Shown piece after piece: positions 1 to 61,195 of a stretch of 64,000 nt of DNA. This stretch comes from Macrostomum lignano. Taxonomy: Eukaryota. The position numbers and the translations under genes are program-made. The DNA lies in contig NIVC01002294.1 in NCBI GenBank assembly GCA_002269645.1, positions 122,099 to 186,098 on the forward strand. Reading direction: 5' to 3'. Every line of letters begins with the position of its first letter. The first letter of the stretch is position 1. Below the pieces are notes generated by a model. That model searched no databases and was not told the DNA's origin. It saw nothing but the letters and a program-made list of their open reading frames with translations.

Positions 1-90
1 TCAGGTTGTGATTTTTTTGTTAAAAATTAATTTGAAGCCAATATCTGCAAACCAAAGTGTGAATAAGATTCGAACCCGTGACCTACCCAG

Positions 91-390
91 GGCCTGACCC
101 CGCGACGCTGCATGGAGCGCGCCTTCACAGAGGCTGGCGTCTTCAATTTCACCAGCCGGGCCTTCCTGCAGCTCGGCGCCAACAAGGAGGCCCCAATGGA
201 CGAGAGCCGCATCAGCTCAGTGATTGTCAGCGACGCGCAGGACCACGCCGTCGTGCGGCTCAACGCCAGCTCCGGCTTCTTCCCGTCCGCCGTCACCATC
301 GTCAAGGGCGACAGCGTGCTGTGGGACTGGGGAGACGCGCCCGAGTTCGAGGAGCACAACATCGTCAATGTGAACCCGCCGAACAGCGCT
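91..390 (+). CDS. L e4: cupredoxin-like repeats 4-5
   Basis: cag|GLTPRRCMERAF...GFFPSAVTIVKGDSVLWDW...HNIVNVNPPNSA|gtgag; phase 0-0. Confidence 0.88.
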
Positions 391-719
391 GTGAGCCGCC
401 TCTGCTTAACTTAACTATAAAACTACACAAGAAGCTACTAACAAACTACTGCCACTCAACAAACTACCCGATAAACTATTCAACAAGCTACCTAAAAACC
501 TGTGCAACTGGCTACCTACGCACTCGACAATCAAATTGCTACAATAACAACAACAGTAACAACAACAACAACAAATACAATCAGCCAATCAACGCCTTCA
601 CAACACTAAAAATGGCCTACAGTAACCTGAAATTCTACACAAACCCCGTAAAATGACCAAAAATCTTTACACTACACGTAGAGTCTGCAAAAAAACCAAA
701 ATATTTATGTACGAAACAA

Positions 720-1045
720 ACAACCGACAAAACAGCCTACACAGAAACCTACACGCAAGCTAAAAAATAACCTACACAACAACCTGCACAACAGCCTAAA
801 AACAATCTACACCACAACCTGCACAACAGCCTACACAACAACCTACACACAACCTACACCACAACCTACACAACAGCCTACACAACAACCGGCACAACAG
901 CCTAAAAAACAATCTACACCACAACCTGCACAACAACCTATACTACAGCCTACATAACAGCCTACAAAACAACCTACACACAACCTACACCACAACCTAC
1001 ACAACAACCTACACAACAACCTCACCACCACCTACACAACAGCTC
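720..1045. repeat. Degenerate CA-rich minisatellite (acctacacaac-like)
   Basis: Direct reading; mirror about 59800-60125. Confidence 0.75.
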
Positions 1046-1105
1046 GCTTACCAACCCACCGAAGCAGCCACAGCTCCAACACAGAAGTTGCCAACCCCAC
1101 TGCAG

Positions 1106-1415
1106 GCACCGCCAGCACGGCGAACGGCGACCAGTCGTTCAACAGCGGGCGGGCGAGTCGTCGCGGCAGCTTCCTGTACACCTTCACCCGGCCCGGCATG
1201 TTCTGCGTGGCTTCGGTGGGCGCGCCGGCCGCTGCGGCTCCGTGCTGGTGCTGCCGGAGCCCGATCGAACTCCTGCACCCAAGATCGTCTCCTTTCACGA
1301 GGGCGGCACCGTTGCCATGGGAACCGTGGTCCGGCTCGAGTGCCGCGACCCCAAGGCCGTCATCCTCTACACCATGGACGGCAGCCCGCCGCTGCTGCAC
1401 CGGCCCGGAGTAAAA
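1106..1415 (+). CDS. L e5: end of cupredoxin repeat and start of CHB_HEX_C-like domain (two 1-bp deletions vs R)
   Basis: R copy reads SFNSG...FLYTFTRPGMF...VILYTMDGSPP in one frame; L lacks single bases near 1112 and 1225. Confidence 0.8.
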
Positions 1416-1418
1416 GTG

Positions 1419-1518
1419 CGAGTTGGAGCTGAGTTGGGGCTGAGTTGGGGCTGAGTTAGGGCTGAGTTGGGGCTGAGTTGGGCTGAGTTGGGGCTGAGTT
1501 GGGGCTGATTTGGGGTTG
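1419..1518. repeat. 11-bp repeat gctgagttggg
   Basis: Direct reading; mirror about 59335-59425. Confidence 0.85.
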
Positions 1519-1544
1519 AATCGGGTGCGAAAGGGGCTGCAATG

Positions 1545-2322
1545 GCTGTGCTCATTCAGTCATTCAGCTGCTGTGCTCATTCAGTCATTCAGTGACTGTG
1601 CTCATTCAGTCATTCAGTGACTGTGCTCATTCAGTCATTCAATGGCTGTTCTCATTCATTAATTCAGCTGCTGTGCTCATTCAGTCATTCAGTGACTGTG
1701 CTCATTCAGTCATTCAATGGCTGTTCTCATTCATTAATTCAGCTGCTGTGCTCATTCAGTCATTCAGTGACTGTGCTCATTCAGTCATTCAGTGGCTGTG
1801 CTCATTCAGTCATTCAGTGGCTGTGCTCATTCAGTAATTTAGTGGCTGTGCTCATTCAGTCATTCAGTGACTGTGCTCATTCAGTCATTCAGTGGCTGTG
1901 CTCATTCAGTCATTCAGTGGCTGTGCTCATTCAGTGACTGTGCTCATTCAGTCATTCAGTGACTGTGCTCATTCAGTCATTCAGTGACTGTGCTCATTCA
2001 GTCATTCAGTGACTGTGCTCATTCAGTCATTCAGTGACTGTGCTCATTCAGTCATTCAGTGACTGTGCTCATTCAGTCATTCAGTGACTGTGCTCATTCA
2101 GTCATTCAGTGACTGTGCTCATTCAGTCATTCAGTGACTGTGCTCATTCAGTCATTCAGTGACTGTGCTCATTCAGTCATTCAGTGACTGTGCTCATTCA
2201 GTCATTCAGTGACTGTGCTCATTCAGTCATTCAGTGACTGTGCTCATTCAGTCATTCAGTGACTGTGCTCATTCAGTCATTCAGTGACTGTGCTCATTCA
2301 GTCATTCAGTGACTGTGCTCAT
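1545..2322. repeat. 25-bp VNTR gtgactgtgctcattcagtcattca
   Basis: About 31 copies. Confidence 0.95.
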
Positions 2323-2766
2323 TTTCAAGCGCAAATGCGAGCAGCCAGGCCCAGAATGCCTCAGTGAGACTCCCCGCCCGTTGCAGACGCTCAAAGGCGA
2401 GCGGCCAATCGCTGACGATGAGGAACCTTCGGCCACCGTGAGCGCTCCTGTCACTGGGGCACAGCATCCAGAGTGCTTCATCACTTTAATTCCTATCCAG
2501 TGCTTTATTTGTTTACCGTTTTGATCACAACAAAAATAGTGAATCAGAGATGCCACCAGCCTGTGGACTCCAAACTTTGTTTCTTAGAGAATGAAATGCC
2601 CTCTTACAACCGTTTCAAGTCTTTGATTTGCTTCCTCGTCACCATGGGCTTTGAATCGAAATTTTCCTCATTTTTGTGGCTTTTGAACTGTTTGCGATGT
2701 CGCTGTCGTCTATTTGGTGAAGCTGACCGCCTCATCAAGCCCCTTCGCCCCGCGCCCTCCCCGCAG

Positions 2767-2873
2767 GTGTACCAGACCTGGGAGCCGCTGAAGCTGCGCA
2801 GGCCGGGCATCGTCTTCATCCGCGCCATGGCGGTGGCGCCAAACCGCCAGCCATCTGAGATTTTCTCCTCCCG
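2767..2873 (+). CDS. L e6: CHB_HEX_C/Fn3-associated domain, second half
   Basis: cag|VYQTWEPLKLRRPGIVFIRAMAVAPNRQPSEIFSS R|gtgag; phase 0-2. Confidence 0.85.
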
Positions 2874-3470
2874 GTGAGTTCATTAGTGAGTTCATGAGTG
2901 AGTTCATGAGTGATTTCATGAGTTCATGAGTGAGTAAGTGAGTGAGTTCATGAGTGAGTAAGTGAGTGAGTTCATGAGTGAGTAAGTGAGTGAGTTCATG
3001 AGTGAGTAAGTGAGTGAGTTCATGAGTGAGTAAGTGAGTGAGTTCATGAGTGAGTAAGTGAGTGAGTTCATGAGTGAGTAAGTGAGTGAGTTCATGAGTG
3101 AGTAAGTGAGTGAGTTCATGAGTGAGTAAGTGAGTGAGTTCATGAGTGATTTCATGAGTTCATGAGTGAGTTCATGAGTGAGTTCATGAGTGAGTTCATG
3201 AGTGAGTTCATGAGTGAGTTCATGAGTGAGTTCATGAGTGAGTTCATGAGTGAGTGAGTAAGTGAGTGAGTGAGTGAGTGAGTGAGTGAGTGAGTGAGTG
3301 AGTAAGTGAGGGAGTGAGTGAGTGAGTGAGCGAGTGAGTGAGTGAGTGAGCGAGTGAGTGAGTGAGTGAGTGAGTGAGCGAGTGAGTGAGTGAGTGAGTG
3401 AGTGAGTGAGTGAGTGAGTGAGTGAGTGAGTGAGTGAGTGAGTGAGTGAGTGAGTGAGTGAGTGAGTGAG
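2874..3470. repeat. GTGAGT/GTAAGT-containing array grading into (gtga)n
   Basis: Begins at the e6 donor. Confidence 0.95.
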
Positions 3471-3500
3471 ATCACTCGATCACGCACTGCAATCCCTCAG

Positions 3501-3606
3501 CCGGTTCTGGGTCGTGGACTCCGGCGCTGGCGAGGACGCCGAGGAATCCGAGGCCGAGGAGGAGCCGGTGGCGGAGGCGGTGGGCCGGGTGGAGCCGGGC
3601 CCCATG
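3501..3606 (+). CDS. L e7: acidic linker
   Basis: cag|RFWVVDSGAGEDAEESEAEEE...PM|gtgag; phase 2-0. Confidence 0.8.
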
Positions 3607-3677
3607 GTGAGTTCAGCGCATTGCTAGCAAAAATGCTTGGCGCAGCAGCTCACCTGAGAACGCAACTCCCGTCACAG

Positions 3678-3959
3678 AGCGAGTCCTGGAAGTGGTTCAA
3701 CTGCGTGCCGGCCGTGAAGCTGCTGCACGTCGTGGACGGCACGGTGGAAATTTTCTGGCAGCCGCTGGCTGAGGGCCTGACGGAGATGCTGGCGGGGTAC
3801 CGCCTGCTGGTCAACGGCGTCTCCTACGGCGGCGTGCGGCTGCCCAGCAACAGCTGCCTGCAGGCGTCGGGGCTGGCGGCCGGCCGAGTGTACAGCATCT
3901 GGCTGGAGGCCCTGCCCAGGGACGGCGCCGCCTACCAGCCGCACAAGTCCAACAAGCTG
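3678..3959 (+). CDS. L e8: FN3 domain
   Basis: VEIFWQP...GYRLLVNG...GLAAGRVYSIWLEA...SNKL|gtggg. Confidence 0.88.
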
Positions 3960-3969
3960 GTGGGTTTCC

Positions 3970-4320
3970 TATGGGTTGCATTGGGTTGCATTGGGTTGCA
4001 TTGGGTTGCACTGGGTTGCACTGGGTTGCATTGAGTTGCATTGGGTTGCATTGGGTTGCATTGGGTTGCATTGGGTTGCATTGTGTTGCATTGGGTTGCA
4101 TTGGGTTGCATTGAGTTGCATTGGGTTGCACTGGGTTGCATTGTGTTGCATTGGGTTGCATTGGGTTGCATTGAGTTGAATTATGTTGCACTGGGTTGCA
4201 TTGGGTTGCATTGAGTTTTATTGGGTTGCATTGGGTTGCATTGGGTTGCATTGTGTTGCATTGGGTTGCATTGGGTTGCATTGGGTTGCACAGGGTTGCA
4301 CTGGGCTGCATTGGGTTGTA
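3970..4320. repeat. 10-bp VNTR ttgggttgca
   Basis: Direct reading. Confidence 0.95.
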
Positions 4321-4357
4321 CTTACGTTAATCACATTGATCTCCATCTCTTCCCCAG

Positions 4358-4627
4358 ACATTCGATTGTCCCCAGGCGACCTCCGTTAGCGGGCCGCTGG
4401 TGTCGCTGGAGCTCAGCAGCAAGCCCAGCACCATCACGCTGGTGTGGGGCGCCCTGGCAGCCACCGACTACTCGCTGCGGGGCTACAAGGTGACGCTGAA
4501 CGGGCGGCAGTGCGGCAAGCTGGTCACCCCGAGGCCGGCAGCAAGCGCTGCAAGGTGGTGATCGAGGGCTGCACGCTGAACTCCGATTATTCCATCATCG
4601 TGTCCGCCGTTCGGGTAGAGTCTACTG
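4358..4627 (+). CDS. L e9: FN3 domain (1-bp deletion near 4530 vs R)
   Basis: TITLVWG...GYKVTLNG...GCTLNSDYSIIVSAV; donor G|gtgag. Confidence 0.82.
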
Positions 4628-4651
4628 GTGAGTTCGAACTCGTTGGGCGCT

Positions 4652-5165
4652 GATTGAGCACTGATTGGGCATCAGGCATTGATTGAGCACTGATTGGGCA
4701 TCAGGCATTGATTGAGCACTGATTGGGCATCAGGCATTGATTGAGCACTGATTGGGCATCAGGCATTGATTGAGCACTGATTGGGCATCAGGCATTGATT
4801 GAGCACTGATTGGGCATCAGGCATTGATTGAGCACTGATTGGGCATCAGGCATTGATTGAGCACTGATTGGGCATCAGGCATTGATTGAGCACTGATTGG
4901 GCATCAGGCATTGATTGAGCACTGATTGGGCATCAGGCATTGATTGAGCACTGATTGGGCATCAGGCATTGATTGAGCACTGATTGGGCATCAGGCATTG
5001 ATTGAGCACTGATTGGGCATCAGGCATTGATTGAGCACTGATTGGGCATCAGGCATTGATTGAGCACAGATTGAGCACATATTGAGCACAGATTGAGCAC
5101 AGATTGAGCACATATTGAGCACAGATTGAGCACAGATTGAGCACAGGTCGAGCACAGATTGAGCA
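4652..5165. repeat. 29-bp VNTR gattgagcactgattgggcatcaggcatt, then 11-bp gattgagcaca
   Basis: Direct reading. Confidence 0.95.
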
Positions 5166-5199
5166 CTTACTAATTGGTCAACTTCCCCGCTGCTCTCAG

Positions 5200-5544
5200 G
5201 CGAGATGTCGGAGCTGCCCTCCAACAAGTTGGAGTTTCGCCTGCCGCTGGACGTTGACTCTGTGGTGCCTCCTGAAGGCTCCCGCCTGCTGCAGTCGGAA
5301 GAGCTCTCCGAGTTCGTCTTCGTGACGGACGGCGTCGGCTACCACCGGATGCCGGCGGAGCAGCTGGAGGCCATCCAGACGGCGGACAGGCGGGCAGCGG
5401 AGAAGGAGAAGGCGGCTAGGGAGGCTGGCGGTGGCTCCAGCGGCTCCGGCAGCTCCAGCAGCTCCAGCAGCAGCCGCAGGAGCTCCATAGTCGAGGAGAA
5501 GCCGGTTGCCAACGGGGACGAGACCGAGACCAAAGAGACTGCGG
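5200..5544 (+). CDS. L e10: FN3 end plus charged/Ser-rich linker
   Basis: cag|GEMSELPSNKLEFRLP...TA G|gtgag; phase 1-1. Confidence 0.82.
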
Positions 5545-5824
5545 GTGAGTCGTCGGCAGCCTTCGAGATTCTTCAGAGTGTTTGAAACCTCGGATTAACG
5601 AATCACGTGACTTGCTTCTTTGTTGTTCACAGATGAATAATTGAATAACATTTGAGTGCATAGATTTTCCTAGAGGCCTTTCTAAACTGGCTTTTGGTGG
5701 CTGGACATTTCCTGGGAGTCTTCAAAGAGTTCGAGAAGCTGTAGAAGAATATGAAGAAGGATAGAGAGTTCCTGAATCCCGAAGCTCCCAGAAAAATACG
5801 CTCGTAGACGTTTTAAACGAAGGA

Positions 5825-6100
5825 GTTCCAGAACCATGGACTATTAGCCTATGGCAGTTCCAGAACCATGGACTATTAGCCTGTGGCAGTTCCAGAACCA
5901 TGGACTATTAGCCTGTGGCAGTTCCAGAACCATGGACTATTAGCCTATGGCAGTTCCAGAACCATGGACTATTAGCCTATGGCAGTTCCAGAACCATGGA
6001 CTATTAGCCTATGGCAGTTCCAGAACCATGGACTATTAGCCTGTGGCAGTTCCAGAACCATGGACTGTTAGCCTGTGGCAGTTCCAGAGCCATGGACTAC
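5825..6100. repeat. 32-bp VNTR ccagaaccatggactattagcct(a/g)tggcagtt
   Basis: About 8 copies. Confidence 0.92.
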
Positions 6101-6280
6101 CTGAGGTCTGAGGGTTCCAGTCGCCAAAAATTGCCCAATGCCGCTACTAACCGCAGAATCCGCTGCTCCGCTAACAGCACAGACCCGCCCCAGCCAACTA
6201 GTGGCACAGATAACCTCACAGCAGGCCTCCCTATGCACTCTCTACCCGCCTGCGGGGTGGTGCACAATGCCGAATTGCAG

Positions 6281-6691
6281 AGAACCAGCAGCAGCCGCAG
6301 CAGATCGAGCTTGAGAAACAGCCGTCCGAGGTGTCCTTCAGCTCGGAGAGCGTCGATGAGCAACAGAAAGAGCAGCAAGCTGAAGAAGTGCCGCTGATGG
6401 AGGATGCGGAGTTCAACAGGCGGCAGCAACCGCGGCACGCCCGCGTCTCCAGCAGCAGCAGCAGCAGCAGCGACAGCTCAGCAGCCCGCTCGGTGACCCC
6501 TCCGCCTGCGCCATTGAAGGAATCAAAGATGGGCGCTCGAGAGCAGCAGAAGAGAGCCGCTGCTGCGCCGTCTCTGTCACCGTCGCCTCCTCCTGCGGCA
6601 GCCGCTGCGGTCCTGGTAAGCGAGCAGCAGCAGCAGCAGCAGCAGAAGCAGAAGCAGCAAAAAGTGAAGCATTCAGATAGCGGAGAATCTG
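6281..6691 (+). CDS. L e11: low-complexity S/Q/A-rich exon
   Basis: Only phase-1 acceptor after an in-frame TAA at 6211; donor G|gtaag; all L/R indels are in frame. Confidence 0.7.
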
Positions 6692-6892
6692 GTAAGAGCG
6701 CGAAGCCCCGTGGACCTCAGAGTTCTGTAGCACCACTAATTAGCTCTAACCATGCCTAACTAATACTTGGTTTGCTAATACTACCAACAGTACTACCCTA
6801 TTGTGAAACAAATTTGCTATTTGTAATTTTGTACTAGGCGTTCTACAAACATTTTAAATGATATAAAAGCGTACGGGGTATTCCATATGATT

Positions 6893-7532
6893 TAGCCCTT
6901 GGCCTTAGCCCTTGGCCTTAGCCCTTGGCCTTAGCCCTTGGCCTTAGCCCTTGGCCTTAGCCCTTGGCCTTAGCCCTTGGCCTTAGCCCTTGGCCTTAGC
7001 CCTTGGCCTTAGCCCTTGGCCTTAGCCCTTGGCCTTAGCCCTTGGCCTTAGCCCTTGGCCTTAGCCCTTGGCCTTAGCCCTTGGCCTTAGCCCTTGGCCT
7101 TAGCCCTTGGCCTTAGCCCTTGGCCTTAGCCCTTGGCCTTAGCCCTTGGCCTTAGCCCTTGGCCTTAGCCCTTGGCCTTAGCCCTTGGCCTTAGCCCTTG
7201 GCCTTAGCCCTTGGCCTTAGCCCTTGGCCTTAGCCCTTGGCCTTAGCCCTTGGCCTTAGCCCTTGGCCTTAGCCCTTGGCCTTAGCCCTTGGCCTTAGCC
7301 CTTGGCCTTAGCCCTTGGCCTTAGCCCTTGGCCTTAGCCCTTGGCCTTAGCCCTTGGCCTTAGCCCTTGGCCTTAGCCCTTGGCCTTAGCCCTTGGCCTT
7401 AGCCCTTGGCCTTAGCCCTTGGCCTTAGCCCTTGGCCTTAGCCCTTGGCCTTAGCCCTTGGCCTTAGCCCTTGGCCTTAGCCCTTGGCCTTAGCCCTTGG
7501 CCTTAGCCCTTGGCCTTAGCCCTTGGCCTCAG
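6893..7532. repeat. 13-bp VNTR cccttggccttag
   Basis: About 49 near-perfect copies; last copy ends cctcag. Confidence 0.97.
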
Positions 7533-7563
7533 TAATCACACATGAGCAGCCGCGCCCCGCCAG

Positions 7564-7728
7564 CTCGCCCAGCGGTGATTCAAATCGCGATGGACGACGA
7601 AGCTTCAGACGCGGGGGCGGCGCCGACGGTCCAGCCGACGGCGCGAAAGCCGCGCCCGCGCGGCGCCTCTCAGAAGCTGCCAATTTATCGTTCGACTGCC
7701 AAGAAATTCGGTGCCGCTCTGGTCACAG
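7564..7728 (+). CDS. L e12: putative disordered exon (boundaries and frame ambiguous)
   Basis: ccgccag|...AVIQIAMDDEASD...LVT G|gtagcc fits phase 1-1; alternative acceptor at 7532 in another frame. Confidence 0.45.
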
Positions 7729-7864
7729 GTAGCCGGTCACGTGACCCTGAGCGTGAAGTGTCGGACAGCTCACCTTTGCCTCCGACTGACTCAATTGCTT
7801 AGTCCCTGCTTCCAGGATCGCTTGAGACTCACCTTGTCACAGAAATGGCACTAAAGTATCGTTA

Positions 7865-7985
7865 AAGTGTCACTGAAATGTCGCTGAAGTGTCGCTGAAG
7901 TGTCACTGAAATGTCACTGAAATGTCACTGAAATGTCACTGAAATGTCACTGAAATGTCACTGAAGTGTCGCTGAAGTGTCACTC
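7865..7985. repeat. 11-bp repeat tgtc(a/g)ctgaa(a/g)
   Basis: Direct reading. Confidence 0.88.
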
Positions 7986-8349
7986 TCACTCTCAGGAGTG
8001 TCACTCGAAAGATGCATCTGACTTCCTCAATTCAGCGCTCCCATATGCAGTTTTTATTTAATATAAGCCGAGAAGTAATCGGTCATGAAATATGCATTCC
8101 GGCATTTAACAAACTCGAAAGATGTCGAACTTAAATTCCCGCCAAAACTGGACCCAAATTACGCAACTGTGAATCAGCACATTTCAACTGCCGTCAAACA
8201 CAAAATTTTTTAAAGTGAAAAGCAGCTGCTAGTTTTAATGTGCTTAAAACGTTGTTTTAACGGTGTTCCCATTTTGGCGCGAATTTGAATTTTCAGATGG
8301 GTTTCCAATAAAATCTTCTCACTGCACTTTGGCTCCCTGCCGCCTACAG

Positions 8350-8743
8350 ACTCGGTCGTGGAGGTGGCGGATGCGGAGCCCGCGAAAGAGCGGCTGGTCG
8401 CCAGCGGTGCCGCGGCAGCAGCGGCAGTGACGGCAGGGGCGGCAGCAGCCGCGCTGTCGGCAGAGGAGACGGCCAGCGCACTGCCGGTGCCGATCGTGCA
8501 GTTGCTGCCCGACCCGGAGCACCCGGACCGGGTTCGCGTCACCTGGGATTTCTCCCGGCCGCTGGAGCACCAGTTCCGGCACGAGGTCAGCACCGTCAGC
8601 GTGGCCGGACGAGCCTTCTCAGCCAAGGTGAACTCGGACATGAGCTTCGACTCGGAGGCTGACGGGGTGGTGCACACCTGGAACTGCACCGGCGGCGAGC
8701 GGGACTGCCTCTGCCGCGGCCTCGCCATCGGCTGCGACTACAG
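8350..8743 (+). CDS. L e13: Ala-rich linker plus FN3
   Basis: RVRVTWDF...RGLAIGCDY R|gtgag; phase 1-2. Confidence 0.82.
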
Positions 8744-8849
8744 GTGAGGGGGGACAGACAGGGATTTCTGTTGGGAGCACCTGGTCTGGAAATATTTTAG
8801 ATTCCGATATGGGGTGCCTTCTCGATTCTCAAAGACATTTGAATTTTAT

Positions 8850-9230
8850 CCTGTCTGTACATCCTGTCTGTACACCCTGCCTGTACTCCCTGTCTGTACA
8901 CCCTGTCTGTACACCCTGCCTGTACTCCCTGTCTGTACAAACCTGTCTGTACACTCTGTCTGTACAACCTGTCTGTATACCCTGTCTGTATACCCTGTCT
9001 GTACATCCTGTCTGTACATCCTGTCTGTACACCCTGCCTGTACGCCCTATCTGTACAAACCTGTCTGTACAACCTGTCTGTACACCCTGTCTATACACCC
9101 TGTCTGTACATCCTGTCTGTACATCCTGTCTGTACACCCTGCCTGTACGCCCTATCTGTACAAACCTGTCTGTACAACCTGTCTGTACAACCTGTCTGTA
9201 CACCCTGTCTGTACACCCTGTCTGTACCCG
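8850..9230. repeat. 13-bp VNTR ctgtctgtacacc
   Basis: Direct reading. Confidence 0.92.
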
Positions 9231-9266
9231 GGAACGCGCCGCCTCCCCGCCGCCTCCCCGCCGCAG

Positions 9267-9761
9267 GATCTCCGTGACGGCCAGCTTCTGTCAGCTGGAC
9301 AGCTCGGGCGTCGGCCAGGCGGAGCTGAGCACAAAGTCGGCGGTCTGCGACTTCACCACCGCCGGGCCGCCGGAGCCGCCGCGCCTAGTCGTTCAGAGCG
9401 TCGACGTCAACCAGGTGGCGGTGGCCTGGCGGCCCGGCCGCGCCTTTGGTGGCGAGGACCTCGTCGGCTACCGACTGCTGATTGAAGGCGAGCCGCAGGG
9501 CGGGCAGCTGCCGGCGCAGACGCAGCAGACGACCCTGGAGCCGCTGCAGCCGGGCCGGACGGTGGCCGTGGCGGTGGTGGCGGTGGCCGGCCGGTCCCAG
9601 CGCACCAGCCAGCCGTCCAACACCGTCCGGGTGAGCTGCCCCCGGCGCCCGGAGCCACCGCAGCTGTCGGAGCAGCCGACCAGCGCGGAGGGCGCCGTCA
9701 TCGTCGCCTGGCAGGGAGAAGCGGCCGCCGGTCCTCAGGAGGAGGACGTCAGCAAGTACCG
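9267..9761 (+). CDS. L e14: FN3 domains
   Basis: PPEPPRL...VAVAWRP...GYRLLIEG...SNTVRVSCP; phase 2-2. Confidence 0.9.
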
Positions 9762-9801
9762 GTGGGTGTCCGGGCCAGGGGCCACCGGAGATATTGGATG
9801 T

Positions 9802-9824
9802 GTTTGTCTGTCTGTCTGTCTGCC

Positions 9825-9867
<43 letters not shown>

Positions 9868-9900
9868 ATGTATGTACATGTATGTCTGTATGTCTGTCTG
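9802..9900. repeat. (tctg)n microsatellite
   Basis: Direct reading. Confidence 0.9.
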
Positions 9901-10454: not shown

Positions 10455-10499
10455 GTGAGTACCGGGCCTCCGGAAAAAACTAAGGAGGATGGGGGAGAC

Positions 10500-50051: not shown

Positions 50052-51355
<1,304 letters not shown>

Positions 51356-51396
51356 CACATCCAATATCTCCGGTGACCTCTGGCCCGGACACCCAC

Positions 51397-51891: not shown

Positions 51892-51914
51892 CTGCGGCGG
51901 GGAGGCGGCGGGTT

Positions 51915-52075
51915 CCCGGGTACAGACAGGGTGTACAGACAGGTTGTACAGACAGGTTTGTACAGACAGGGAGTACAGGCAGGGTGTACAGACAGGGTGT
52001 ACAGACAGGGTGTACAGACAGGGTGTACAGACAGGGTGTACAGACAAGGTGTACAGACAGGGTGTACAGGCAGGA
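51915..52075. repeat. 13-bp VNTR (mirror, shorter)
   Basis: Direct reading. Confidence 0.9.
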
Positions 52076-52179
52076 TAAAATTCAAAGGTTTTTGAGAATC
52101 GAGAAGGCGCCTTATACCGGAATCTAAAATATTTCCAGACCAGGTGCTCCCAACAGAAATCCCTGTCTGTCCCCCTCAC

Positions 52180-52573
52180 CTGTAGTCGCAGCCGATGGCG
52201 AGGCCGCGGCAGAGGCAGTCCCGCTCGCCGCCGGTGCAGTTCCAGGTGTGCACCACCCCGTCAGCCTCCGAGTCGAAGCTCATGTCCGAGTTCACCTTGG
52301 CTGAGAAGGCCCGTCCGGCCACGCTGACGGTGCTGACCTCGTGCCGGAACTGGTGCTCCAGCGGCCGGGAGAAATCCCAGGTGACGCGAACCCGGTCCGG
52401 GTGCTCCGGGTCGGGCAGCAACTGCACGATCGGCACCGGCAGGGCGCTGGCCGTCTCCTCTGCCGACAGCGCGGCTGCTGCCGCCCCTGCCGTCACCGCC
52501 GCTGCTGCCGCGGCACCGCTGGCGACCAGCCGCTCTTTCGCGGGCTCCGCATCCGCCACCTCCACGACCGAGT
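52180..52573 (-). CDS. R e13
   Basis: Mirror of 8350-8743. Confidence 0.82.
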
Positions 52574-52939
52574 CTGCAGGTGGCAGGGAGCCAAAGTGCA
52601 GTGAGAAGATTTTATTGGAAACCCATCTGAAAATTCAAATTCGCGCCAAAATGGGAACACCGTTAACACAACGTTTTAAGCACATTAAAACTAGCAGCTG
52701 CTTTTCACTTTAAACATTTTTGTGTTTGATGGCAGTTGAAATGTGCTGATTCACAGTTGCCAAATTTGGGTCCAGTTTTGGCGGCAATTTAAATTCGACT
52801 TCTTTCGAGTTTGTTAAATGCCGGAATGCATATTTCATGACCGATTACTTCTCGGCTTATATTAAATAAAAACTGCATATGGGAGTGCTGAATTGAGGAA
52901 GTCAGATGCATCTTTCGAGTGACACTCCTGAGAGTGAGA

Positions 52940-53275
52940 GCGACACTTCAGCGACACTTCAGTGACACTTCAGCGACACTTCAGCGACACTTCAGCGACA
53001 CTTCAGCGACACTTCAGCGACACTTCAGCGACACTTCAGTGACACTTCAGCGACACATCAGCGACACTTCAGCGACACTTCAGCGACACTTCAGTGACAC
53101 TTCAGCGACACTTCAGCGACACTTCAGTGACACTTCAGCGACACTTCAGCGACACTTCAGCGACATTTCAGTGACACTTCAGCGACACTTCAGCGACACT
53201 TCAGCGACATTTCAGTGACACTTCAGTGACACTTCAGTGACACTTCAGTGACACTTCAGCGACACTTCAGTGACA
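52940..53275. repeat. 11-bp repeat gacacttcagc (mirror, longer)
   Basis: Direct reading. Confidence 0.92.
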
Positions 53276-53414
53276 CTTTAACGATAATTAAGTGCCATTT
53301 CTGTGACAAAGTGACTCTCAAGCGATCCTGGAAGCAGTGACTAAGCAATTGAGTCAGTCGGAGGCAAAAGTGAGCTGTCCGGCACTTCACGCTCAGGGTC
53401 ACGTGACCGGCTAC

Positions 53415-53579
53415 CTGTGACCAGAGCGGCACCGAATTTCCTGGCAGTCGAACGATAAATTGGCGGCTTCTGAGAGGCGCCGCGCGGGCGCGGCTTTCGC
53501 GCCGTCGGCTGGACCGTCGGCGCCGCCCCCGCGTCTGAAGCTTCGACGTCCATCGCAATTTGAATCACCGCTGGGCGAG
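53415..53579 (-). CDS. R e12 (ambiguous)
   Basis: Mirror of 7564-7728. Confidence 0.45.
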
Positions 53580-53614
53580 CTGGCGGGGCGCGGCTGCTCA
53601 TGTGTGATTACTGA

Positions 53615-53860
53615 GGCCAAGGGCTAAGGCCAAGGGCTAAGGCCAAGGGCTAAGGCCAAGGGCTAAGGCCAAGGGCTAAGGCCAAGGGCTAAGGCCAAGG
53701 GCTAAGGCCAAGGGCTAAGGCCAAGGGCTAAGGCCAAGGGCTAAGGCCAAGGGCTAAGGCCAAGGGCTAAGGCCAAGGGCTAAGGCCAAGGGCTAAGGCC
53801 AAGGGCTAAGGCCAAGGGCTAAGGCCAAGGGCTAAGGCCAAGGGCTAAGGCCAAGGGCTA
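53615..53860. repeat. 13-bp VNTR ctaaggccaaggg (mirror, about 18 copies)
   Basis: Direct reading. Confidence 0.95.
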
Positions 53861-54062
53861 AATCATATGGAATACCCCCGTACGCTTTAATATCATTTAA
53901 AATGTTTGTAGAACGCCTAGTACAAAATTACAAATAGCAAATTTGCTTCACAATAGGGTAGTACTGTTGGTAGTGTTAGCAACTCAAGCATTAGTTAGGC
54001 ATGGTTAGAACTCATTAGTGGTGCTACAGAACTCTGAGGTCCACGGGGCTTCGCGCTCTTAC

Positions 54063-54270
54063 CAGATTCGCCGCTATCTGAATGCTTCACTTTTTGCTGC
54101 TTCTGCTGCTGCTTCTGCTGCTGCTGCTGCTGCTGCTCGCTTACCAGGACCGCAGCGGCTGCCGCAGGCGGAGGCGACGGTGACAGAGCGGCTCTCTTCT
54201 GCTGCTCTCGAGCGCTCATCTTTGATTCCTTCAATGGCGCAGCCGGAGGGGTCACCGAGCGGGCTGCTGA

Positions 54271-54304
<34 letters not shown>

Positions 54305-54473
54305 GAGACGCGGGCGTGCCGCGGTTGCTGCCGCCTGTTGAACTCCGCATCCTCCATCAGCGGCAGTTCTTCAGCTTGCTGCTCTTTTTGTTGCTCATCG
54401 ACGCTCTCAGAGCTGAAGGACACCTCGGACGGCTGTTTCTCAAGCTCGATCTGCTGCGGCTGCTGCTGGTTCT
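54063..54473 (-). CDS. R e11: low complexity
   Basis: Mirror of 6281-6691. Confidence 0.7.
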
Positions 54474-54659
54474 CTGCAATTCGGCATTGTGCACCACCCC
54501 GCAGGCGGGTAGAGAGTGCATAGGGAGCCCTGCGGTGAGGTTATCTGTGCCACTAGTTGGCTGGGGCGGGTCTGTGCTGTTAGCGGAGCAGCGGATTCTG
54601 CGGTTAGTAGCGGCATTGGGCAATTTTTGGCGACTGGAACCCTCAGACCTCAGGTAGTC

Positions 54660-54930
54660 CATGGCTCTGGAACTGCCACAGGCTAACAGTCCATGGTTCT
54701 GGAACTGCCACAGGCTAATAGTCCATGGTTCTGGAACTGCCATAGGCTAATAGTCCATGGTTCTGGAACTGCCATAGGCTAATAGTCCATGGTTCTGGAA
54801 CTGCCATAGGCTAATAGTCCATGGTTCTGGAACTGCCACAGGCTAATAGTCCATGGTTCTGGAACTGCCACAGGCTAATAGTCCATGGTTCTGGAACTGC
54901 CATAGGCTAATAGTCCATGGTTCTGGAACT
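54660..54930. repeat. 32-bp VNTR (mirror)
   Basis: Direct reading. Confidence 0.92.
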
Positions 54931-55209
54931 CCTTCGTTTAAAACGTCTACGAGCGTATTTTTCTGGGAGCTTCGGGATTCAGGAACTCTCTATCCTTCTT
55001 CATATTCTTCTACAGCTTCTAGAACTCTTTGAAGACTCCCAGGAAATGTCCAGCCACCAAAAGCCAGTTTAGAAAGGCCTCTAGGAAAATCTATGCACTC
55101 AAATGTTATTCAATTATTCATCTGTGAACAACAAAGAAGCAAGTCACGTGATTCGTTAATCCGAGGTTTCAAACACTCTGAAGAATCTCGAAGGCTGCCG
55201 ACGACTCAC

Positions 55210-55554
55210 CCGCAGTCTCTTTGGTCTCGGTCTCGTCCCCGTTGGCAACCGGCTTCTCCTCGACTATGGAGCTCCTGCGGCTGCTGCTGGAGCTGCTGGA
55301 GCTCCCGGAGCCGCTGGAGCCACCGCCAGCCTCCCTAGCCGCCTTCTCCTTCTCCGCTGCCCGCCTGTCCGCCGTCTGGATGGCCTCCAGCTGCTCCGCC
55401 GGCATCCGGTGGTAGCCGACGCCGTCCGTCACGAAGACGAACTCGGAGAGCTCTTCCGACTGCAGCAGGCGGGAGCCTTCAGGAGGCACCACAGAGTCAA
55501 CGTCCAGCGGCAGGCGAAACTCCAACTTGTTGGAGGGCAGCTCCGACATCTCGC
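55210..55554 (-). CDS. R e10
   Basis: Mirror of 5200-5544. Confidence 0.82.
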
Positions 55555-55589
55555 CTGAGAGCAGCGGGGAAGTTGACCAATTAGTAAGT

Positions 55590-55900
55590 GCTCAATCTGT
55601 GCTCAACCTGTGCTCAATATGTGCTCAATCTGTGCTCAATCAATGCCTGATGCCCAATCAGTGCTCAATCAATGCCTGATGCCCAATCAGTGCTCAATCA
55701 ATGCCTGATGCCCAATCAGTGCTCAATCAATGCCTGATGCCCAATCAGTGCTCAATCAATGCCTGATGCCCAATCAGTGCTCAATCAATGCCTGATGCCC
55801 AATCAGTGCTCAATCAATGCCTGATGCCCAATCAGTGCTCAATCAATGCCTGATGCCCAATCAGTGCTCAATCAATGCCTGATGCCCAATCAGTGCTCAA
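55590..55900. repeat. 11-bp and 29-bp VNTR (mirror, shorter)
   Basis: Direct reading. Confidence 0.93.
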
Positions 55901-55926
55901 TCAGCGCCCAACGAGTTCGAACTCAC

Positions 55927-56197
55927 CAGTAGACTCTACCCGAACGGCGGACACGATGATGGAATAATCGGAGTTCAGCGTGCAGCCCTCGATCACCACC
56001 TTGCAGCGCTTGCTGCCGGCCTCGGGGGTGACCAGCTTGCCGCACTGCCGCCCGTTCAGCGTCACCTTGTAGCCCCGCAGCGAGTAGTCGGTGGCTGCCA
56101 GGGCGCCCCACACCAGCGTGATGGTGCTGGGCTTGCTGCTGAGCTCCAGCGACACCAGCGGCCCGCTAACGGAGGTCGCCTGGGGACAATCGAATGT
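55927..56197 (-). CDS. R e9: FN3 (intact frame)
   Basis: 271 bp; phase 0-1. Confidence 0.87.
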
Positions 56198-56234
56198 CTG
56201 GGGAAGAGATGGAGATCAATGTGATTAACGTAAG

Positions 56235-56755
56235 TACAACCCAATGCAGCCCAGTGCAACCCTGTGCAACCCAATGCAACCCAATGCAACCCAATGCAAC
56301 ACAATGCAACCCAATGCAACCCAATGCAACCCAATAAAACTCAATGCAACCCAATGCAACCCAGTGCAACATAATTCAACTCAATGCAACCCAATGCAAC
56401 CCAATGCAACACAATGCAACCCAGTGCAACCCAATGCAACTCAATGCAACCCAATGCAACCCAATGCAACACAATGCAACCCAATGCAACCCAATGCAAC
56501 CCAATGCAACCCAATGCAACCCAATGCAACACAATGCAACCCAGTGCAACCCAATGCAACTCAATGCAACCCAATGCAACCCAATGCAACACAATGCAAC
56601 CCAATGCAACTCAATGCAACCCAATGCAACCCAATGCAACACAATGCAACCCAATGCAACCCAATGCAACCCAATGCAACCCAATGCAACTCAATGCAAC
56701 CCAGTGCAACCCAGTGCAACCCAATGCAACCCAATGCAACCCAATGCAACCCATA
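56235..56755. repeat. 10-bp VNTR tgcaacccaa (mirror, longer)
   Basis: Direct reading. Confidence 0.95.
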
Positions 56756-56765
56756 GGAAACCCAC

Positions 56766-57047
56766 CAGCTTGTTGGACTTGTGCGGCTGGTAGGCGGCGC
56801 CGTCCCTGGGCAGGGCCTCCAGCCAGATGCTGTACACTCGGCCGGCCGCCAGCCCCGACGCCTGCAGGCAGCTGTTGCTGGGCAGCCGCACGCCGCCGTA
56901 GGAGACGCCGTTGACCAGCAGGCGGTACCCCGCCAGCATCTCCGTCAGGCCCTCAGCCAGCGGCTGCCAGAAAATTTCCACCGTGCCGTCCACGACGTGC
57001 AGCAGCTTCACGGCCGGCACGCAGTTGAACCACTTCCAGGACTCGCT
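56766..57047 (-). CDS. R e8: FN3
   Basis: Mirror of 3678-3959. Confidence 0.88.
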
Positions 57048-57118
57048 CTGTGACGGGAGTTGCGTTCTCAGGTGAGCTGCTGCGCCAAGCATTTTTGCTA
57101 GCAATGCGCTGAACTCAC

Positions 57119-57223
57119 CATGGGCCCGGCTCCACCCGGCCCACCGCCTCCGCCACCGGCTCCTCCTCGGCCTCGGATTCCTCGGCGTCCTCGCCAGCGC
57201 CGGAGTCCACGACCCAGAACCGG
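57119..57223 (-). CDS. R e7: acidic linker (1-bp deletion vs L)
   Basis: 105 bp vs 106 bp; ggcccatg vs ggccccatg. Confidence 0.75.
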
Positions 57224-57253
57224 CTGAGGGATTGCAGTGCGTGATCGAGTGAT

Positions 57254-57886
57254 CTCACTCACTCACTCACTCACTCACTCACTCACTCACTCACTCACTC
57301 ACTCACTCACTCACTCACTCACTCACTCACTCACTCACTCACTCACTCGCTCACTCACTCACTCACTCACTCACTCACTCGCTCACTCACTCACTCACTC
57401 GCTCACTCACTCACTCACTCCCTCACTTACTCACTCACTCACTCACTCACTCACTCACTCACTTACTCACTCACTCATGAACTCACTCATGAACTCACTC
57501 ATGAACTCACTCATGAACTCACTCATGAACTCACTCATGAACTCACTCATGAACTCACTCATGAACTCATGAAATCACTCATGAACTCACTCACTCACTC
57601 ACTCGCTCGCTCACTCACTCATGAACTCACTCACTTACTCACTCATGAACTCATGAAATCACTCATGAACTCACTCACTTACTCACTCATGAACTCACTC
57701 ACTTACTCACTCATGAACTCACTCACTTACTCACTCATGAACTCACTCACTTACTCACTCATGAACTCACTCACTTACTCACTCATGAACTCACTCACTT
57801 ACTCACTCATGAACTCACTCACTTACTCACTCATGAACTCATGAAATCACTCATGAACTCACTCATGAACTCACTAATGAACTCAC
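57254..57886. repeat. (tcac)n / actcac array (mirror)
   Basis: Direct reading. Confidence 0.95.
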
Positions 57887-57993
57887 CGGGAGGAGAAAAT
57901 CTCAGATGGCTGGCGGTTTGGCGCCACCGCCATGGCGCGGATGAAGACGATGCCCGGCCTGCGCAGCTTCAGCGGCTCCCAGGTCTGGTACAC
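57887..57993 (-). CDS. R e6
   Basis: Mirror of 2767-2873. Confidence 0.85.
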
Positions 57994-58437
57994 CTGCGGG
58001 GAGGGCGCGGGGCGAAGGGGCTTGATGAGGCGGTCAGCTTCACCAAATAGACGACAGCGACATCGCAAACAGTTCAAAAGCCACAAAAATGAGGAAAATT
58101 TCGATTCAAAGCCCATGGTGACGAGGAAGCAAATCAAAGACTTGAAACGGTTGTAAGAGGGCATTTCATTCTCTAAGAAACAAAGTTTGGAGTCCACAGG
58201 CTGGTGGCATCTCTGATTCACTATTTTTGTTGTGATCAAAACGGTAAACAAATAAAGCACTGGATAGGAATTAAAGTGATGAAGCACTCTGGATGCTGTG
58301 CCCCAGTGACAGGAGCGCTCACGGTGGCCGAAGGTTCCTCATCGTCAGCGATTGGCCGCTCGCCTTTGAGCGTCTGCAACGGGCGGGGAGTCTCACTGAG
58401 GCATTCTGGGCCTGGCTGCTCGCATTTGCGCTTGAAA

Positions 58438-59300
58438 ATGAGCACAGTCACTGAATGACTGAATGAGCACAGTCACTGAATGACTGAATGAGCACAGTCA
58501 CTGAATGACTGAATGAGCACAGTCACTGAATGACTGAATGAGCACAGTCACTGAATGACTGAATGAGCACAGTCACTGAATGACTGAATGAGCACAGTCA
58601 CTGAATGACTGAATGAGCACAGTCACTGAATGACTGAATGAGCACAGTCACTGAATGACTGAATGAGCACAGTCACTGAATGACTGAATGAGCACAGTCA
58701 CTGAATGACTGAATGAGCACAGTCACTGAATGACTGAATGAGCACAGTCACTGAATGACTGAATGAGCACAGTCACTGAATGACTGAATGAGCACAGTCA
58801 CTGAATGACTGAATGAGCACAGTCACTGAATGACTGAATGAGCACAGTCACTGAATGACTGAATGAGCACAGTCACTGAATGACTGAATGAGCACAGTCA
58901 CTGAATGACTGAATGAGCACAGCCACTGAATGACTGAATGAGCACAGTCACTGAATGACTGAATGAGCACAGTCACTGAATGACTGAATGAGCACAGCCA
59001 CTAAATTACTGAATGAGCACAGCCACTGAATGACTGAATGAGCACAGCCACTGAATGACTGAATGAGCACAGTCACTGAATGACTGAATGAGCACAGCAG
59101 CTGAATTAATGAATGAGAACAGCCATTGAATGACTGAATGAGCACAGTCACTGAATGACTGAATGAGCACAGCAGCTGAATTAATGAATGAGAACAGCCA
59201 TTGAATGACTGAATGAGCACAGTCACTGAATGACTGAATGAGCACAGCAGCTGAATGACTGAATGAGCACAGCAGCTGAATGACTGAATGAGCACAGCCA
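58438..59300. repeat. 25-bp VNTR (mirror)
   Basis: Direct reading. Confidence 0.95.
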
Positions 59301-59427
59301 TTGCAGCCCCTTTCGCACCCGATTCAACCCCAAATCAGCCCCAACTCAGCCCCAACTCAGCCCAACTCAGCCCCAACTCAGCCCTAACTCAGCCCCAACT
59401 CAGCCCCAACTCAGCTCCAACTCGCAC

Positions 59428-59739
59428 TTTTACTCCGGGCCGGTGCAGCAGCGGCGGGCTGCCGTCCATGGTGTAGAGGATGACGGCCTTGGGGTCGCGG
59501 CACTCGAGCCGGACCACGGTTCCCATGGCAACGGTGCCGCCCTCGTGAAAGGAGACGATCTTGGGTGCAGGAGTTCGATCGGGCTCCGGCAGCACCAGCA
59601 CGGAGCCGCAGCGGCCGGGCGCGCCCACCGAAGCCACGCAGAACATGCCGGGCCGGGTGAAGGTGTACAGGAAGCTGCCGCGACGACTCGCCCGCCCGCT
59701 GTTGAACGACTGGTCGCCGTTCGCCGTGCTGAGCGGTGC
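59428..59739 (-). CDS. R e5 (intact frame)
   Basis: 104 codons; FLYTFTRPGMF and ILYTMDGSPP. Confidence 0.88.
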
Positions 59740-60454
59740 CTGCAGTGGGGTTGGCAACTTCTGTGTTGGAGCTGTGGCTGCTTCGGTGGGTTGGTAAGCG
59801 AGCTGTTGTGTAGGTGGTGGTGAGGTTGTTGTGTAGGTTGTTGTGTAGGTTGTGGTGTAGGTTGTGTGTAGGTTGTTTTGTAGGCTGTTATGTAGGCTGT
59901 AGTATAGGTTGTTGTGCAGGTTGTGGTGTAGATTGTTTTTTAGGCTGTTGTGCCGGTTGTTGTGTAGGCTGTTGTGTAGGTTGTGGTGTAGGTTGTGTGT
60001 AGGTTGTTGTGTAGGCTGTTGTGCAGGTTGTGGTGTAGATTGTTTTTAGGCTGTTGTGCAGGTTGTTGTGTAGGTTATTTTTTAGCTTGCGTGTAGGTTT
60101 CTGTGTAGGCTGTTTTGTCGGTTGTTTGTTTCGTACATAAATATTTTGGTTTTTTTGCAGACTCTACGTGTAGTGTAAAGATTTTTGGTCATTTTACGGG
60201 GTTTGTGTAGAATTTCAGGTTACTGTAGGCCATTTTTAGTGTTGTGAAGGCGTTGATTGGCTGATTGTATTTGTTGTTGTTGTTGTTACTGTTGTTGTTA
60301 TTGTAGCAATTTGATTGTCGAGTGCGTAGGTAGCCAGTTGCACAGGTTTTTAGGTAGCTTGTTGAATAGTTTATCGGGTAGTTTGTTGAGTGGCAGTAGT
60401 TTGTTAGTAGCTTCTTGTGTAGTTTTATAGTTAAGTTAAGCAGAGGCGGCTCAC

Positions 60455-60754
60455 AGCGCTGTTCGGCGGGTTCACATTGACGATGTTGTGCTCCTCGAAC
60501 TCGGGCGCGTCTCCCCAGTCCCACAGCACGCTGTCGCCCTTGACGATGGTGACGGCGGACGGGAAGAAGCCGGAGCTGGCGTTGAGCCGCACGACGGCGT
60601 GGTCCTGCGCGTCGCTGACAATCACTGAGCTGATGCGGCTCTCGTCCATTGGGGCCTCCTTGTTGGCGCCGAGCTGCAGGAAGGCCCGGCTGGTGAAATT
60701 GAAGACGCCAGCCTCTGTGAAGGCGCGCTCCATGCAGCGTCGCGGGGTCAGGCC
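60455..60754 (-). CDS. R e4
   Basis: Mirror of 91-390. Confidence 0.88.
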
Positions 60755-60834
60755 CTGGGTAGGTCACGGGTTCGAATCTTATTCACACTTTGGTTTGCAG
60801 ATATTGGCTTCAAATTAATTTTTAACAAAAAAAT

Positions 60835-61195
60835 CACAACCTGATTCCTCGAATTCACAACTTTATTCCTAGAATTCACAACTTGATTCCTAGAATTCAC
60901 AATCTGATTCCTAGAACTCACAACCTGATTCCTAGAACTCACAACCTAAATTGTAGAATTCACAGCCTCTGATTCCTAGAATTCACAGCCTCTGATCCCT
61001 AGAATTCACAACCTGATTCCTAGAATTCACAACCTGATTCCTAGAATTCACAACCTGATTCCTGGAATTCACAGTCTGATTCCTGGAATTCACAGTCTGA
61101 TTCCTAGAATTCACAGTCTGATTCTTAGAATTCACAGTCTGATTCTTAGAATCCACAGTCAGATTCCTGGAATTGACATCCTGATTCCTGGAATT
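60835..61195. repeat. 21-bp VNTR cctgattcctagaattcacaa
   Basis: In the e3-e4 intron. Confidence 0.9.

Follow-up and report, generated by a model that had tools for sequence, protein, structure and literature searches.

The palindromes of the human Y and X chromosomes are kept by gene conversion, and their arms are more than 99.9% identical. The locus described here, which lies in a window of 64 kb (the whole stretch of DNA that was analysed), resembles these sex-chromosome palindromes (P1-P8 of the human Y, and those of the X) in having inverted arms of tens of kb, gene copies in opposite orientation, a centre of a few kb and some blocks without substitutions. It departs from them in the identity of its arms, which ranges from 98.8% in unique sequence to about 97% over all sequence, and also in its centre, given that one of the arm-to-spacer junctions is unsequenced and that the 'spacer' is the rest of one gene copy.

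A second described system, heterotype false duplication, is an artefact of assembly (Rhie et al. 2021, PMC8081667; Ko et al. 2022, PMC9516828). Haplotype contigs placed on one scaffold are 'often separated by gaps' (PMC8081667, Extended Data Fig. 5), and a gap, or a stretch without read support, between the copies is used as a criterion for this kind of duplication (PMC9516828). The present locus has in common with it near-identical copies of a locus on one scaffold with a gap between them, homology that runs up to a contig end, heterozygous-like variants, locally raised consensus errors, and one gene copy cut by the gap, which results in an apparent gene gain. In the published cases the copies mostly lie next to each other in tandem, in contrast to the inverted second contig of this locus. 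In those studies the diagnosis is made from half depth, discordant links and 1-copy k-mers (PMC8081667, PMC9516828), and the likeness drawn here is one of sequence.

Palindromic chimeric long reads (PMC9516828) also leave an inverted self-match in an assembly, as seen in this window, but they are 7-17 kb long, with arms that are essentially identical and with neither a gap nor an asymmetric centre, and none of these properties applies here.

From these comparisons and from the analyses below we infer, with a probability of roughly 0.7, that the window holds two allelic contigs of one locus, that is, a heterotype false duplication, which were joined in inverted orientation by scaffolding.

Arms, gap and centre of the inverted match

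Self-alignment of the whole window places positions 1..29048 in inverted homology with positions 60844..34117, a match whose length and identity are far beyond chance. The arms of 29.0 and 26.7 kb around a 5-kb stretch, with an N gap at the inner end of the left arm, that the earlier note had described were recovered by the alignment: the left arm measures 29,048 bp, the right arm 26,728 bp, and they are separated by 5,068 bp, 4,757 bp of it sequenced. The parts of the window are the following.

1..29048, plus strand: contig A, the 'left arm', with one copy of a fibronectin-III-repeat gene (inverted match, Pfam fn3, exon model)
28696..28836, plus strand: exon of the left copy that lies nearest to the gap, with its donor GT at 28837 and its counterpart at 34468-34328 in the right copy
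29049-29359, no strand: assembly gap of 311 N, the sole N run in the window, abutting the final homologous base of the left arm
29360..34116, minus strand: the so-called spacer, the 3' end of the right copy and its downstream flank, occurring once in the window
33737..33896, minus strand: terminal exon of the right copy, 160 bp, with a TGA stop (exon model), within the 'spacer' and absent from the left copy
33980..34067, minus strand: penultimate exon of the right copy, 88 bp, with splice sites ccgcag/ACCACT...GAAGAA/gtgagt, within the 'spacer' and absent from the left copy
34117..60844, minus strand: the 'right arm', part of contig B, with the second gene copy and an uninterrupted reading frame in the exon model
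60845..64000, minus strand: contig B beyond the visible match, with more upstream exons of the right copy at 61239-61679 and about 62624-62933 (exon model and tblastn with relatives)

No biological junction is sequenced at either end of the left arm. Its outer end is the edge of the window, where the match opens at base 1 within a 21-bp array that resumes at 60834-61197; because the outer limit is thus set by the window edge, the extent of at least 60 kb proposed earlier is right, and the partner of 60845..64000 would lie to the left of window base 1. Its inner end is the end of a contig at which homology is still perfect, and not an observed end of homology. The left gene copy is consequently incomplete on both sides: the window edge truncates it 5', and the gap truncates it 3', inside an intron and 212 bp beyond the donor of exon 28696-28836. 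On the other side of the gap, contig B (29360-64000, in minus-strand reading) terminates inside 33-bp and 47-bp tandem arrays (29361-29873), and the end of a contig within a tandem array is a typical assembly break. It is the gap alone that supports the inverted join.

As judged from the right copy, position 29048 should be followed by about 49 bp of intron, the 88-bp exon, an intron of 83 bp and the 160-bp terminal exon, and the left copy would need about 380 bp to reach its stop codon, against the estimated 311 N. This continuation was sought to the right of the gap and was not found there, and since the expected intron and exons are absent, the letters that flank the gap are not continuous and no reading frame spans it. 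Self-comparison gave zero inverted self-match for 29360-34116 and zero match between this stretch and the remaining window; as it has neither symmetry of its own nor a match to the arms, a palindrome that continues across the gap is rejected.

The transition from the right arm to the 'spacer' is contiguous, with no mark of a boundary, and the 5-kb spacer of the earlier note turns out not to be a true spacer, given that the right gene copy continues into 29360-34116 with two exons and its stop codon. These last two exons are conserved in invertebrate relatives, and the predicted protein of the right copy aligns with a relative from Lingula (P0002) up to query residue 2405 of 2407, with 35.7% identity.

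Sequence differences between the two copies

The arms had been reported to differ by a MITE, SNPs and VNTR lengths, and all three kinds of difference were recovered. Identity is about 97% over the megablast blocks with tandem arrays included, single blocks going down to 94.7%, and 98.8% outside the arrays, where 15,066 aligned bases contain 184 substitutions (105 transitions and 79 transversions) and 37 indels. The arms are collinear across the entire 27-29 kb, every intronic minisatellite locus included. Aligned blocks are separated by 27 intervals, of which 17, nearly all tandem arrays, have unequal lengths in the two arms, the difference reaching 2.5 kb. Two features stand out among the length differences.

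10790..11473, no strand: MITE-like insertion of 684 bp with 153-nt terminal inverted repeats (98% complementary), in the left copy only
16528..20086, no strand: 32-bp intronic minisatellite with about 113 units in the left copy and about 32 units in the right (43846-44850), which at 2.5 kb accounts for the greatest difference in length that the arms show

The MITE-like element interrupts a 48-bp minisatellite whose array in the right copy is unbroken (48963-49468).

Within exons, 28 synonymous, 14 non-synonymous and no nonsense changes were counted, giving a pN/pS of 0.17 and a pS of 1.7%, which is near the 1.6% of non-exonic sequence; the exon finder misses some exons (49500-49919 and, upstream, 62624-62933 were recovered by tblastn only), and therefore exon counts and pN/pS are approximate. 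Both gene copies show purifying selection and carry no disabling substitution. The substitutions, the changes in array length and the MITE go beyond sequencing errors and look like a biological, allele-like signature. Such haplotype-type differences would look the same in a recent real duplicate.

Divergence is distributed as a mosaic. Blocks 1-5823 and 23826-29048 contain 1 and 0 substitutions, respectively, over the roughly 3 kb of unique sequence that could be aligned in either of them (P about 1e-15 for each under a uniform rate), and the other blocks diverge by 1.4-2.7%; about 40% of the arm is essentially substitution-free, and the heterogeneity among blocks is pronounced (chi-square 162, 4 degrees of freedom, p = 7e-34). 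Over 5.9 kb, the near-substitution-free blocks hold 1 substitution and 16 indels, each of 1 bp and most of them located in short runs of one base, and these indels look like independent consensus errors on an identical underlying sequence. At least four 1-bp indels (1112, 1224, 4526 and 16164) frameshift exons of the left copy where the model of the right copy reads through; at 1224 the frame of the right copy yields a Pfam domain match that is lost in the frame of the left copy. A decaying pseudogene would not show frameshifts without substitutions.

Origin of the inverted arrangement

If the arms are two alleles of one locus, one maternal and one paternal, that the assembler left unmerged, contig A would be a haplotype contig that stops about 0.5 kb beyond the last structural difference, where the haplotypes would become indistinguishable, and contig B would be the other haplotype, which carries on for another 4.7 kb and includes the last two exons and the flank downstream of them. 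On the actual chromosome, sequence present in contig B only (34116 down to 29360) would then lie directly beside the 3' end of contig A, and for that reason a proximity-based scaffolder (Hi-C, Chicago or linked reads) would be expected to link this end with the 29360 end of contig B. Joining the two ends would give the head-on, tail-to-tail arrangement across the gap, an inverted outcome that would require the scaffolder to be strand-insensitive.

The mosaic of divergence counts against an allelic origin of the arms, as it is unexpected under a simple neutral two-allele model and would need identity by descent, haplotype switching between contigs or homogenisation by polishing. Blocks with 0 or 1 substitution are compatible with conversion tracts and, to the same degree, with identity by descent or with a switch of haplotype between allelic contigs; conversely, arm-to-arm gene conversion in a real palindrome explains the mosaic equally well. 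The length of the gap also has to be considered. A run of 311 N is not round, and because mate pairs, long reads and optical maps carry orientation, a gap sized from such data would speak for a real join; the number could also come from a gap of fixed length that was later polished or partly filled.

These two points are among those that speak for a real large inverted duplication, in which an inverted copy of a segment with most of the gene arose about 5 kb downstream of its source and arm-to-arm gene conversion equalised some blocks while others diverged. The left copy would then either lack the last two exons or end inside the gap. Such a duplication would have the order and orientation that the scaffold has, the non-round gap may reflect linking data that are aware of distance, and the alternation of identical blocks with blocks 1.4-2.7% divergent is the pattern that patchy conversion gives; moreover, where the final 5 kb of a repeat are free of substitutions, its inner boundary is a place at which assembly could break. 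We nevertheless consider this origin unlikely. There is no sequenced junction, and the boundary of the arm would have to fall in the roughly 311 unread bases past the contig end, which would be a coincidence unless the repeat itself caused the break; the assembler crossed the equivalent boundary between arm and 'spacer' on the right side easily, and kept both copies of the substitution-free blocks apart. The arms are also less alike, at 98.8% (unique) and about 97% (overall), than the more than 99.9% of well-studied palindromes that undergo gene conversion. Finally, both copies show purifying selection and no disabling substitution, and the defects of the left copy consist only of 1-bp indels, mostly in short base runs, inside the substitution-free blocks.

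If the join were real, which we think improbable, the window would hold a palindrome of more than 60 kb in a GC3-extreme metazoan, with two convergent copies of a giant fibronectin-III-repeat gene and patchy conversion. Its arms, with some blocks identical and a divergence of as much as about 3-5% in others, would represent an intermediate state of a 'decaying or young' palindrome that is rarely documented outside sex chromosomes. The sequence itself does not demand this reading, and the biological palindrome with two gene copies tail-to-tail that had been suggested is backed by no sequenced junction, its left junction being hidden in the gap.

Two real paralogous copies, either from a recent segmental duplication elsewhere or as homeologs of a polyploid, could likewise have been joined wrongly by the scaffolder. 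The contigs are indeed distinct, with real substitutions, changes in array length and the MITE difference, and the nearest relative found belongs to a tetraploid snail genus. Old homeologs, however, would be diverged throughout, and of two blocks with about 3 kb each one contains no substitution and the other a single one; pS is only 1.7%; and the copies are collinear over the whole 27-29 kb, down to every intronic minisatellite locus, with no end of a duplication marked. We consider paralogous copies very unlikely, and homeologs of a whole-genome duplication in particular were rejected, as divergence is not spread over the full length (chi-square 162, p = 7e-34). The earlier note had weighed an inverted duplication against joined haplotypes or homeologs and had held an artefact to be at least as likely; the artefact is favoured, in its haplotype form, on account of the contig end, the 'spacer' that is the 3' end and downstream flank of a gene copy and the allele-like differences, and homeologs are not supported, given the blocks with 0-1 substitutions and the pS of 1.7%.

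A chimeric fold-back long read, as produced by a missed hairpin adapter, or another single-molecule artefact is hardly credible, since the palindromic artefacts of read length reported in long-read assemblies measure 7-17 kb (PMC9516828) against arms of at least 27-29 kb that extend past the window, since the arms differ by 184 substitutions with a coding-aware pattern, the MITE and kilobase-scale array changes, and since the centre is a gap followed by 4.7 kb of asymmetric sequence with no fold-back point; the differences between the arms and the asymmetric centre effectively refute it and bear out its earlier exclusion.

Should the arrangement be the product of scaffolding, a large gene would be present on the scaffold in one false additional copy, which in its written form is truncated and frameshifted, which an annotator would call a paralogue or a pseudogene and which would inflate gene counts; the true downstream neighbour of contig B would be displaced, and the locus would have to be purged or flagged. 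Should it be real, it would be a large, incompletely homogenised palindrome of autosomal type, useful for the study of how conversion and divergence compete.

Relatives of the fibronectin-III-repeat gene

The gene is a large fibronectin-III-repeat gene, in the left copy of which fn3 domains were detected by Pfam, run on stop-free translated pieces. Over long collinear alignments its nearest proteins, from a snail, a brachiopod, a hemichordate and a crinoid, are 28-36% identical to it, and the short matches of higher identity are metagenome fragments. In an exhaustive search of protein sequences, the 395-aa exon recovered relatives with E values as low as 8e-85; that the word-indexed search with the same exon returned no match reflects the limit of its candidate step and not an absence of relatives. 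Rfam and tRNA scans of the whole window gave no matches. GC3 is 0.90, which resembles that of lamprey genes as reported (PMC3141671) and is taken as a lead only. Weak hints from PDB and Pfam, all below threshold and not relied upon, liken the N-terminal repeats to plastocyanin and the C-terminus to thioredoxin.

Inverted match and its ends

Opposite-strand self-comparison of the window paired 1-29048 with 60844-34117 as one chain, confirming as an observation the inverted repeat that an earlier note had described; after tandem-repeat masking, 28 collinear blocks covered 15,066 bases. The sizes that it had given for arms and spacer also agree with ours (arms of 29,048 and 26,728 bp; spacer of 5,068 bp, 4,757 of these sequenced), as does the N gap bordering the left arm on its inner side. 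The match runs as far as base 29048 and stops where the only N run in the window (29049-29359, 311 letters) begins; on this inner side, the left arm thus ends with its contig (contig A, 1-29048; the right arm lies in contig B, 29360-64000). On the outer side, the match is already present at the first base of the window, within a 21-bp array that resumes opposite at 60834-61197, so that the outer arm end is simply the window edge. Both ends of the left arm are technical, and the palindrome arises solely from two contigs set head-on across a gap.

The sequence between the arms

When the right arm is read inward beyond the counterpart of 29048, the first ~49 bases are more intron, followed by exons with canonical splice sites:

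34067-33980, minus strand, penultimate exon of the right gene copy, 88 bp
Between the two exons, minus strand, intron with canonical splice sites, 83 bp
33896-33737, minus strand, terminal exon of the right gene copy, 160 bp, ending in TGA

Given these two exons and the stop codon, the 'spacer' (29360-34116) is the 3' end of the right gene copy plus downstream flank; the 5-kb size reported earlier holds, but the notion of a separate spacer does not, since the right copy ends inside it. A simple exon finder, which was trained on stop-free pieces bearing fibronectin type III (fn3) domains and misses some exons, modelled the right copy as 20 exons encoding at least 2,407 residues. This protein model is collinear with its relatives, and the alignment to the Lingula protein reaches residue 2405 of 2407, indicating that both 'spacer' exons are part of the conserved gene. 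The left copy is broken off 212 bp into an intron, short of its stop codon by ~380 bp, which exceeds the estimated 311 N. To the right of the gap, 33-bp and 47-bp tandem arrays open the sequence (29361-29873), and 29360-34116 has neither an internal inverted match nor any match to the remaining window. The sequence left of the gap does not carry on to its right, and the gap is not spanned by any reading frame.

Differences between the arms

Raw identity between the arms in megablast blocks was ~97%, which looks low because tandem arrays account for 44% of the window, with more than 20 minisatellites in the arms. With the arrays excluded, there were 184 substitutions (1.2%; 105 transitions, 79 transversions) and 37 indels, the substitutions being spread very unevenly (heterogeneity p = 7e-34).

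Substitutions between the arms, by left-arm block
1-5823: 1 substitution in 3,052 aligned bases (0.03%)
6100-13873: 135 substitutions in 5,049 aligned bases (2.7%)
13924-16527: 8 substitutions in 1,221 aligned bases (0.7%)
20087-23430: 40 substitutions in 2,868 aligned bases (1.4%)
23826-29048: 0 substitutions in 2,876 aligned bases (0%)

In the modelled exons, 28 differences were synonymous, 14 non-synonymous and none nonsense; pN/pS was 0.17, and pS (1.7%) was close to the non-exonic value (1.6%), a pattern that argues for real biological variation under selection instead of sequencing noise. Seventeen of the 27 inter-anchor intervals were unequal in length, nearly all of them tandem arrays, the biggest differences lying in a 32-bp array (2.5 kb; 16528-20086) and in a (GACA)n tract of 1.3 kb, which reaches this length in the right copy only. 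The left copy alone carries a MITE-like element, for which the window held no further copies:

10790-11473, left copy only, MITE-like element, 684 bp, with 153-nt terminal inverted repeats 98% complementary

A third copy of the terminal motif lies inside the element, and its host sequence is a 48-bp minisatellite. Substitutions, array lengths and this element together bear out the earlier statement that the arms are not identical. Intronic minisatellites are of more than 20 kinds, with units of 5-78 bp (for example, 16528-20086, 24262-25512 / 37666-39450 and 50052-51357).

Sixteen one-base indels, mostly in short C, G, A or T runs, fell in the two substitution-free blocks. Ten of them are packed into 1.5 kb that carries no substitution (25513-26994 versus 37665-36180), an unusually error-dense stretch that lies within a few kb of where the contig ends. 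At least four one-base deletions disrupt left-copy exons (1112, 1224, 4526 and 16164, which frameshift four exons; all but one lie in short C or G runs), while the right-copy model stays open, and at 1224 the Pfam match comes from the right-copy frame alone. A compensating pair at 26793/26798 turns FWTRWC of the right copy into FWTAAC in the left. Because the frameshifts come without accompanying substitutions, these deletions and the compensating pair are likely to be consensus errors, which suggests that the consensus of contig A is poorer. Owing to the frameshifting indels, the left copy would be annotated as a pseudogene.

Origin of the inverted arrangement

Judging from the sequence, we estimate a probability of roughly 70% that the arrangement is an artefact; the true large inverted duplication with tail-to-tail copies, proposed earlier, is probably not real. 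Zero sequenced bases document an inverted junction. Contig A halts while still in perfect homology with contig B, which runs through the remaining gene, matching the published picture of heterotype false duplication, in which two unmerged haplotypes of one locus are placed on one scaffold (PMC8081667, PMC9516828); half depth and discordant links are its further marks (PMC9516828). The end of contig A, ~0.5 kb past the final structural difference of the two copies, fits a bubble branch that rejoins, and that of contig B, inside a tandem array, is a typical break point. On the chromosome itself, contig A would have its 3' end directly beside the contig-B-only sequence (34116 down to 29360), and a scaffolder sensing proximity but not strand could join that end to the 29360 end of contig B, which would yield the inverted arrangement seen.

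A real inverted duplication appears unlikely, although the gap length of 311 is not round, and mate pairs, long reads or optical maps as its source would carry orientation; with such linking data, allelic confusion would come without an inverted join, and the read-pair geometry that we worked through favours contig A followed by reversed contig B, unlike the order seen. However, 311 could instead be what is left of a fixed-length gap after partial filling or polishing. The alternation of identical with divergent blocks departs from a simple neutral two-allele model, alleles needing identity by descent, haplotype switching between the contigs or homogenisation by polishing, and patchy arm-to-arm gene conversion would account for it equally. 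Arm identity is far under that of known conversion-maintained palindromes. Moreover, a real duplication forces the arm boundary into 311 unread bases beside a contig end, whereas the assembler crossed the equivalent right-side point without trouble, and the sole defects of the left copy resemble consensus errors.

All other explanations taken together are improbable. Of the haplotypes or homeologs joined by scaffolding that had been suggested, haplotypes agree with geometry, truncation and differences, and homeologs are ruled out by the substitution-free blocks and low pS; a simple fold-back read is excluded, as the earlier note had it, by arm length, arm differences and the asymmetric centre. 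In practice, the locus needs a depth and spanning-read check, and contig A should be purged if haplotypic.

The gene and its relatives

Stop-free plus-strand pieces of the left arm encode fn3 domains (Pfam, E down to 1e-18). Searches with tblastn using the relatives found two exons absent from the model (49500-49919 and 62624-62933), hence the right copy covers at least 33737-62933 (minus strand); the left copy occupies 1-28836 (plus strand). Third-position GC of the predicted right-copy coding sequence is 0.90, versus ~0.52 in non-exonic unique sequence; a comparable split has been described for lamprey genes (PMC3141671), and the closest protein relatives here are invertebrate.

An exhaustive profile search identified these as large uncharacterised proteins (E to 8e-85; 28-36% identity across long collinear alignments) from Bulinus, Lingula, Ptychodera, Anneissia, Nematostella and a sponge, with no named or studied family member found among them. 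A word-indexed protein search returned zero matches for the exon matched at E = 8e-85; low-complexity words had probably filled its candidate list. The relatives, of 1,500-3,800 residues, span molluscs, brachiopods, hemichordates, echinoderms, cnidarians and sponges, and the counterpart of their ~450 extra N-terminal residues must lie outside the window. The protein is at least 2,400 residues long and has many fn3 domains; its N-terminal repeats give at most a weak hint of plastocyanin (PDB E 0.03-0.17), and its C-terminal region gives a weak thioredoxin-like hint, with an FWTRWC motif.
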